A DNA stretch of 63,658 nt, the filler included, from Octopus bimaculoides (Eukaryota), in NCBI RefSeq assembly GCF_001194135.2. It is 5 parts of 5 records of this genome, joined end to end, with 100 filler letters (N's around TTAATTAATTAA, not from the genome) between each part and the next. Parts side by side here need not be neighbours in the genome. Positions count along the whole stretch, not along the records: positions 24,601 to 50,496 come from NC_069007.1; 4 more parts are not named here. The stretch is one strand, 5' to 3'. Position 1 is the stretch's first letter. Every line of letters starts with the position of its first letter. The notes beneath the pieces are model-generated. The model ran no database searches and had not been told where the DNA came from. It saw only the letters and a program-made list of their open reading frames with translations. Made by a program: the position numbers and the translations under genes. Positions 27,482 to 28,699 of this stretch are shown piece after piece.

Positions 27482-27604
27482 GTACAACCAAATGTGACTA
27501 CACTGGTCGAATATATGGACTCTCACATAGCCTGAGGTCATTTTGTGTAGTGTGCAGTTGTGTGAGGGGAGGCGACCTCAAATGTTATCACATAGATTGC
27601 CCTA
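27482..27604 (+). CDS. Internal exon (phase 1-1, 123 bp) encoding a 6-Cys VWC/pacifastin-like module
   Basis: Acceptor ttctgtctctgtAG and donor GTAAGT at 27605. Peptide (G)TTKCDYTGRIYGLSHSLRSFCVVCSCVRGGDLKCYHIDCP with pattern C-x16-C-x2-C-x-C-x6-C-x4-CP. Confidence 0.8.
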
Positions 27605-27754
27605 GTAAGTGTTTGATGTTACGTCACTAAAGAAAATGGCTATACAAACGATATCCCACTGGACTTATGCCTTTGCAGTATTAAGTCAAATCTATTTATG
27701 TTTTGAATTCAAATCTTGTCGGGATATAACTGAATGTGCATATCATCCTTCCAA

Positions 27755-27970
27755 TATTGGTTTCAAATTTTGGTACAAGGCCAGTAGATTCGGCGGGAGT
27801 GAGTAAGTCGATTATGTCAACTGCCAGCCCTCGGCTGTGGTTCTTATTTTATCGACCACGAAAGGATGAAAAGCAAAGCCAACCTCGGCAGAATTTGAAC
27901 TCAGTAAATAAAGACGAACGAAAGGCCGCTAAGTATATTTCCCGGCGTGCTAACAATTCTGCCAGCCCGC
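27755..27970 (-). mobile_element. SINE family B inside the intron of the VWC-like gene
   Basis: Reverse complement of gctggcagaattgttagcacgccggg...gagttcaaattctgccgagg...ctttcatcctttcgtggtcgataaaataag. Confidence 0.85.
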
Positions 27971-28455
27971 AGAATTACCGAACTATACTGTACCACCACC
28001 ACCACTACCAACAACAATAACAACAACAACACCACCACCATCATCACCACCATTTGATATTTATTGTTAGTCGATATATATACATTCATTTAATCATTAT
28101 TATTATTGTATTTTGACCTGAAGATTAGCTATATTTTTTAATAGAATTGATTTTAGATCGATTTATTTTGAATCGATTTGGTTTTTATTTTTATTTTCTA
28201 TTTGAAAATATGGTTATGAAACACGTGTAGTCCTTTTTACTATTTTAATATTTATTACATTGTACTTTTTTGATTTTTATTATTGGTCTTTTTAGTGTAT
28301 TTACTTATTAAATTTTTCTATATATGATTGTGTATTTTCATGGATGAATTCAATAATTGTGGTTTTTTTCTCTAGATTTTTTAATATGCTAGGCCACTGG
28401 TTTTAAATTGATATTAATCAAATTAATATTCAAATTTTTCACCCTTATTATGTAA

Positions 28456-28501
<46 letters not shown>

Positions 28502-28556
28502 GTGTTATATGTATGCATGTGTGTGTATATATATATGTATGTATATATATTTACAG

Positions 28557-28642
28557 GAAATGTGAAAGGCTTCGCAGACGATGAGTATGAAGATCTAGTT
28601 GAAAGGAATAAAAAAGTCCTCAGTGCTGTCGAAAATAGCTAA
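28557..28642 (+). CDS. Terminal coding exon of the VWC/pacifastin-like gene
   Basis: Acceptor tatttacAG; the phase-1 join A|GA gives R, then NVKGFADDEYEDLVERNKKVLSAVENS-TAA. The frame agrees with the upstream exon and AATAAA follows 52 nt after the stop. Confidence 0.7.
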
Positions 28643-28693
28643 TTTGGTTGAAAATCTCTTCATCTCATCAACTGAAGTTGCGGCAGCAATTTA

Positions 28694-28699
28694 AATAAA
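28694..28699 (+). promoter_or_regulatory. Polyadenylation signal AATAAA
   Basis: Located just after the stop of the predicted terminal exon, with T-rich sequence downstream. Confidence 0.55.

Follow-up and report, generated by a model that had tools for sequence, protein, structure and literature searches.

The window considered here is a stretch of 63,658 nucleotides (nt) of Octopus bimaculoides DNA (assembly GCF_001194135.2). The piece analysed within it comes from record NC_069007.1, has its left edge at 24601, and consists of AT-rich, repeat-laden animal DNA with assembly gaps. On its + strand lies what appears to be part of a small spliced gene, whose second exon encodes a single module with six cysteines. 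The features assigned to this gene, compared with Octopus vulgaris where possible, are as follows.

27455..27481, + strand: polypyrimidine tract and AG acceptor of exon 2 (sequence reading; flank 95% identical to O. vulgaris, AG kept)
27482..27604, + strand: exon 2, 41 codons, phase 1-1, a single six-cysteine module (G)TTKCDYTGRIYGLSHSLRSFCVVCSCVRGGDLKCYHIDCP (ortholog match and constraint)
27605..27610, + strand: exon 2 donor GTAAGT (A/GTAAGT; sequence reading; the same in O. vulgaris)
27605..28556, + strand: intron of 952 nt with a short interspersed nuclear element (SINE) copy at ~27780-27975, a (CAA/CCA)n tract and TA/TG microsatellites (sequence reading)
28557..28642, + strand: candidate terminal coding exon, (A+GA=R)NVKGFADDEYEDLVERNKKVLSAVENS then TAA (syntenic counterpart in O. 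vulgaris)
28643..28720, + strand: candidate 3' untranslated region with AATAAA at 28694-28699 and a T-rich stretch beyond (85-88% identical to O. vulgaris)

Direct reading of the sequence gives an exon 2 acceptor of ...tctgtctctgtAG, with its AG at 27480-81, and a 123 nt exon that translates as GTTKCDYTGRIYGLSHSLRSFCVVCSCVRGGDLKCYHIDCP once one base is taken from the preceding exon. The candidate terminal exon has the acceptor tttacAG at 28555-56 and an 86 nt coding stretch ending in a TAA stop at 28640-42, with both junctions in phase 1. AATAAA begins 52 nt past this stop, and the signal and its surroundings are kept in O. vulgaris. In the intron, 27801-27970 belongs to a repeat family according to multi-copy blastn matches. 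The splice sites, phase 1 junctions, spliced peptide and AATAAA position given in the preliminary description of this locus were all recovered on re-reading. That description also held that the open reading frame (ORF) track misses the gene; the gene is indeed spliced, yet a mechanical ORF of 65 aa at 27433-27630 includes exon 2 in frame.

The framework C-x(10-20)-C-x2-C-x-C-x(5-9)-C-x(3-5)-C appears at two places when the piece is translated in all six frames, once in exon 2 and once in minus-strand SINE-derived junk near 24.7 kb. None of 200 block shuffles contains it, so the six-cysteine framework is not a product of chance.

Among 5.8 billion protein clusters, the exon 2 peptide has a single relative, an 87-aa "hypothetical predicted protein" of O. 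vulgaris (CAI9742243.1 / A0AA36BXZ4), and running HMMER without filters against 1.84 billion representatives returned no further close relatives. UniRef names A0AA36BXZ4 "VWFC domain-containing protein", which is the label of the source. The exon 2 peptide is 86-88% identical to it at the amino-acid level (E 1.5e-17). The O. vulgaris gene consists of three exons in a locus of chromosome record OX597840.1, hereafter L001. Its exon 1 encodes the signal peptide MSENMLLKPLVFLCLVLSCESKP and ends at a phase-1 CCAG/GTAAGT donor; the ortholog of exon 2 follows 6.1 kb downstream and the third annotated exon another 8 kb beyond. L001 is collinear with the window, and non-exon syntenic blocks average 86% identity.

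Exon 2 differs from its ortholog by 16 substitutions, of which ~5.5 are non-synonymous, giving a dN of 0.061, a dS of 0.58 and an omega of 0.105, and six of six cysteines are kept. When 16 substitutions were placed at random, only 0.08% of simulated trials gave five or fewer amino-acid changes (P=0.0008). Because of these few amino-acid changes, the low omega and the signal peptide of the ortholog, exon 2 can be regarded as a constrained coding exon of a gene for a secreted protein, and on this comparison of two sequences it is very probably real. This agrees with the hidden spliced gene proposed in the preliminary description, now with purifying selection on exon 2, and with the small secreted product proposed there, given the signal peptide of the O. 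vulgaris protein. A tblastn search of 24601-27481 found no signal-peptide exon. Synteny with O. vulgaris places the exon of this species ~2-4 kb left of 24601, and its absence from the preliminary description is explained by this expected position beyond the left edge of the piece.

The last coding exon

The preliminary description ended the gene with the exon at 28557-28642, and judged on sequence comparison this exon is slightly favoured as the one in use. Its counterpart at the syntenic position in O. vulgaris codes from L001 21584, and there the frame is still open (RNVKGFADEDYEFLVASDKGILSSLDKHPLN followed by a stop). The acceptor region is strongly conserved, with 26 of the 27 preceding bases, AG included, the same in both species (96%). 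The acceptor, the frame and the AATAAA have thus kept their places, as would be expected of a genuine last exon. The codons themselves evolve neutrally, with an omega of 1.1; in 46% of simulations the frame stays open by chance under the substitutions seen, and the number of amino-acid changes is ordinary (simulation P=0.13). Furthermore, the O. vulgaris gene model does not use this exon, instead pairing exon 2 with a last exon at L001 24354-24419.

It is possible, though doubtful, that exon 2 is real while the gene ends elsewhere, either in an exon of the O. vulgaris type (DRAHHCDICGKPFSPTDYLTTS), in an exon hidden in an N run, or by read-through of the exon 2 donor. In that case 28557-28642 would belong to conserved non-coding DNA or terminate some other transcript. 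The O. vulgaris annotation, the neutral omega and the chance survival of the frame all favour such an ending, and the window position syntenic to the annotated exon falls inside an N run (32918-33786). However, L001 24354-24419 directly abuts a SINE and resembles a fragment of a C2H2 zinc-finger (ZNF) linker, DRAHHCDICGKPFS (HHCDICGKPFS), features that would be typical of an artefact, and it has no counterpart in the readable part of the window. We judge it more likely to be an ab initio annotation artefact in a ZNF-rich genome. The strong acceptor, the fitting phase and the AATAAA kept at a normal distance also speak for the candidate exon and against an ending elsewhere.

Read-through past the exon 2 donor (27605-27630) would add CPSKCLMLRH and a stop, and O. 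vulgaris has CPSKCLLLRH and a stop at L001 ~16311-16340. The 8-codon extension and its stop are therefore kept between the species, which counts for read-through, but the product would be left with an odd seventh cysteine. This cysteine sits where the first cysteine of a next tandem module would. The read-through ORF (27433-27627) has no exact match on record. In the protein collections searched there is no transcript-derived protein with either ending, and the peptide strings are absent from the literature searched.

The coding DNA of the gene is more divergent than its surroundings, at 19.6% versus 9.1% in the immediate non-coding flanks (Fisher P=0.0006). Synonymous divergence in exon 2 reaches ~40% of sites versus a non-coding baseline of 14% (P=0.002). 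Identity to O. vulgaris is 93-95% in the intron flanks of exon 2 (window 27400-27665) and 87% in the exon itself. The final 14 codons of the candidate tail (28601-28642, 42 nt) are only 52% identical to O. vulgaris with no indel, between flanks that are 85-96% identical (P=3e-7 vs baseline). A micro-inversion was considered as the cause of this hypervariable patch and rejected. The pattern, drawn from two species, may reflect diversifying selection, local mutation or constrained flanks alike.

Class of the six-cysteine module

The cysteines of the exon 2 module are spaced 16/2/1/7/4. The preliminary description read this as the N-terminal half of a von Willebrand C-type (VWC) domain, also matching the pacifastin protease-inhibitor fold. 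The VWC part of that reading fits the spacing and the bridging protein described below, while the pacifastin signature fails. On the present evidence the module is likely a stand-alone six-cysteine unit of the type of VWC subdomain 1 (SD1) and of the E modules of VWF and mucins.

Pfam scans recovered no relevant family, either for the exon peptide and the spliced peptide (E<=10) or for the O. vulgaris protein (E<=1); the VWC (PF00093) and Pacifastin_I models, which the preliminary description had put forward as a check, do not match the octopus peptide. The link to known families comes instead from an unnamed metagenomic protein of 393 aa (P0003), matched at E 3.5e-4 library-wide. It has a lipoprotein-like N-terminus followed by seven tandem six-cysteine modules. 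Its repeats match Pacifastin_I (3e-40, 136 bits), positions 1-41 of the 57 of VWC (7e-30) and FnI_RECK (3e-25) together, which shows that, at the level of sequence profiles, these three models overlap on one module class. The octopus peptide aligns to the repeats without gaps and with six invariant cysteines, and hhalign gives this pairing 92% probability (E 7e-7). In shuffles that moved every residue except the cysteines, only 0.1% scored as high as the real peptide, so the likeness to P0003 exceeds a bare cysteine pattern. A 393-aa gene upstream of the O. vulgaris locus was considered as kin of P0003 and rejected; the shared length is a coincidence, and tblastn of P0003 against L001 matches exon 2 only.

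A profile of the octopus and P0003 sequences, which is dominated by P0003, matches the E modules of MUC2 (332-369, 802-837), VWF (350-385), MUC5AC and MUC5B. The same profile also matches locust and related pacifastin inhibitors, as well as VWC domains from CCN3 and NELL2. No candidates came from a word-indexed search of proteins with the mixed alignment.

AlphaFold2 was run with a mixed alignment including the bridging P0003 repeats and, as a control, with the two octopus sequences only. The mixed alignment yields a model of five strands (pLDDT 81), which matches the VWC domains of collagen IIA (5nir) and NEL at a TMq of 0.80 each. Matches to the E modules of MUC5AC, MUC2 and VWF range from 0.69 to 0.78, with a root-mean-square deviation of 1.1 A over 37 columns for MUC5AC, and those to fibronectin type I (FnI) modules from 0.72 to 0.79. 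Pacifastins reach only 0.41-0.49 over 27-29 columns. The octopus-only model (pLDDT 76) keeps the C-terminal hairpin, but its N-terminal half lacks the sheet of the mixed-alignment model, and it matches neither VWC nor pacifastin folds. The structure check put forward in the preliminary description therefore favours VWC-SD1, E and FnI modules over pacifastin only when the bridging repeats are aligned. As the matches depend on this single protein, the fold evidence is supportive but not independent.

VWC domains share with the octopus module the GxxY after the first cysteine and the CxxCxC motif, and the SD1 of the first VWC domain of crossveinless-2 (CV2) has nearly the same spacing (16/2/1/6/4 versus 16/2/1/7/4). 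The cysteines of CV2 VWC1 lie at positions 9, 26, 29, 31, 38 and 43, of which C1-C4 and C3-C5 pair within SD1 while C2 and C6 bond to SD2 (PMC6270503). The octopus module differs from VWC in having six cysteines rather than ten, and the position of the conserved VWC Trp is not Trp. SD2, with its CCxxC, is absent from the octopus gene, so C2 and C6 must bond each other or remain free. Downstream of the module, the + strand shows no C..CC..C motif of SD2 over 22 kb of the window or 18 kb of O. vulgaris, with the N runs of the window as a small loophole. The absence of the four further VWC cysteines, already remarked on in the preliminary description, is borne out by the lack of CCxxC in the tail exon and in the downstream + strand stop-free stretches.

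The E modules of VWF and the gel-forming mucins are the top profile matches and, like the octopus module, are stand-alone, SD1-like six-cysteine units of ~37 residues. They always come after TIL within a large VWD-C8-TIL-E D assembly (PMC11207715), in contrast to the module of the octopus ortholog, which lies directly behind a signal-peptide exon. Neither the piece nor L001 showed any sequence coding for VWD, C8 or TIL. The arthropod single-VWC (SVWC) proteins, including Vago, are likewise small secreted proteins with one VWC-type module behind a signal peptide. They are defined by eight conserved cysteines in four disulfides (PMC13115929), whereas the mature octopus protein has six under either model of the 3' exon in the window, and no sequence match to the octopus peptide was found among them.

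Judged from sequence, it is unlikely that the product is a true pacifastin-family serine protease inhibitor, possibly of saliva or venom, with the C5-YHI[D/A]-C6 loop as its reactive site. Pacifastins (PF05375) are small secreted proteins and share the six cysteines, the CxxCxC core and the C5-x4-C6 loop followed by Pro (CxxCxC...G...CxxxxCP, as in locust inhibitors). Their signature is C-x(9-12)-C-N-x-C-x-C-x(2-3)-G-x(3-6)-C-T-x3-C, of which the C4-x2-G, G-x4-C5 and C5-x4-C6 parts fit the octopus module. The first spacing, however, is 16 instead of 9-12, forming an extra hairpin, and the Asn expected after C2 is Val and the Thr expected after C5 is Tyr. Among the family models, Pacifastin_I gives P0003 its highest score, and the octopus-containing profile matches the solved inhibitors 1kj0, 2xtt and 1gl0 (E ~1e-5 to 1e-4), but this profile is the one dominated by P0003. 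The lack of a Pacifastin_I match for the octopus peptide itself and the low TMq relative to the 0.7-0.8 of VWC, E and FnI modules also count against an inhibitor. In addition, His would occupy P1, where canonical inhibitors seldom have it. Pacifastins have been reported from the O. vulgaris posterior salivary gland proteome (PMC7693380), which lends this explanation some support, but none of the peptides listed in the supplementary tables of that study comes from this protein.

A further alternative is that exon 2 belongs, as one of several modules, to a large protein of multi-VWC, mucin or VWF-like type, or that it survives as a decaying relic of such a gene; this is very improbable. In its favour, shuffled extracellular modules are classically encoded by phase 1-1 exons, and the C6-P is followed in frame by SKC, at the point where another tandem module would be expected to begin (compare ACAPTC in P0003). 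Against it, no other cysteine-rich + strand exon was found in 22 kb of the window or 18 kb of O. vulgaris, the remainder of the piece is transposon debris without nearby VWD, C8 or TIL sequences, the signal-peptide exon of the ortholog directly precedes the module, and an omega of 0.10 argues against decay.

Repeats and other features of the piece

The remaining features of the piece are repeats and transposon remnants, of which the following were located.

44976-46343, + strand: Tigger/pogo-type DNA transposon remnant, with a 256-aa ORF matching DDE_1 at 1e-31
24601-24920, 43582-43936, 47605-47778, 48292-48417, 49587-49962, both strands across copies: interspersed repeat copies, first group
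27801-27970, 28914-29106, 33787-34044, 44105-44284, 48462-48612, both strands across copies: interspersed repeat copies, second group
27050-27420, - strand: non-LTR retrotransposon-like fragment (...GRPRTRWLNVIKEDLQRL...), no Pfam match
36659-36958, + strand: ORF resembling a mariner-type transposase N-terminus, no Pfam match at E<=1
39710-40482, - strand: ORF resembling a long interspersed nuclear element (LINE) endonuclease fragment, no Pfam match at E<=1

The ORFs flanking the 256-aa DDE_1 ORF resemble N- and C-terminal parts of the transposase, separated by frame breaks. The interspersed copies belong to two short families with many copies on both strands, sharing 75-97% identity with O. 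vulgaris, and one of these is arrayed in L001 with a period of ~184 bp (19400-20640 and 30070-30640). The stretch at 27050-27420 is GC-rich and "exon-like" but was rejected as an exon, as its minus strand resembles the C-terminal tail of a non-LTR retrotransposon protein. This fragment predates the split of the two species, since it lies in the same place in O. vulgaris. Scans of the piece for tRNAs and Rfam families were empty.

A putative secreted mini-protein

The explanation we consider probable on balance is that a small octopus gene with three exons, coding for a secreted mini-protein, has its 3' part at this locus; the product would be an extracellular binder built on a self-closed six-cysteine module of the SD1/E type. 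Exon 1, beyond the left edge, would supply the signal peptide, exon 2 the module, and the last exon, most probably 28557-28642, a short charged tail, giving a secreted product of ~70 residues. The module would belong to a class that takes in VWC subdomain 1, the E modules of VWF and mucins, FnI modules and, more distantly, the pacifastin inhibitors.

In this proposal, terminal exon use, disulfide pairing, fold and binding role are what we infer. Pacifastins have the disulfide connectivity C1-C4, C3-C5, C2-C6, and the same pairing should hold for the octopus module. The C2-C6 bond would be its natural third bond, and is expected because SD2, the partner of C2 and C6 in a full VWC domain, is absent. 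The result would be a rigid, β-rich mini-domain outside the cell, acting as a stoichiometric binder or antagonist of another protein rather than as an enzyme or polymer. Pacifastin modules block serine proteases, so the partner could be a protease; it could also be a BMP-type ligand, as for CV2 SD1, or something else. In CV2, SD1 together with a short N-terminal clip clamps BMP-2 (PMC6270503). By analogy with these systems, a binding or antagonist role for the octopus module seems an even prospect.

Several observations weigh against this proposal. The signal peptide is observed in O. vulgaris only, and searches of PDB sequences with the peptide alone and with a two-octopus profile returned nothing relevant, in line with the empty Pfam scans. 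The octopus-only AlphaFold2 model lacks the matching folds. At the 3' end, the neutral evolution of the candidate exon, the chance-level survival of its frame, the divergence of its last codons and the other last exon of the O. vulgaris model all point the same way.

A further idea is that the gene encodes a free-standing SD1 module of the Octopus lineage, a living intermediate between VWC/E modules and pacifastin-type inhibitors, with a tail under diversifying selection. This is quite improbable. If true, the tail pattern (52% identity over 14 codons between flanks of ~88%) would be that expected of an effector of saliva or venom, reproduction or immunity co-evolving with its target. The hypervariable tail is the one feature that could raise the interest of the gene, and if the gene were expressed solely in the salivary glands or in some other specialised tissue, the protein would become a candidate effector.

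The gene itself is of an ordinary kind and does not overturn current knowledge. It adds a small secreted cysteine-rich gene to the octopus genome at a place where no protein model has it, and suggests that the only existing gene model, that of O. vulgaris, may carry the wrong last exon. For the wider family, it would provide a clean case of a single phase 1-1 exon encoding the first VWC subdomain used alone, and would support the view of SD1, E modules and pacifastin-like modules as one class of self-sufficient six-cysteine units.

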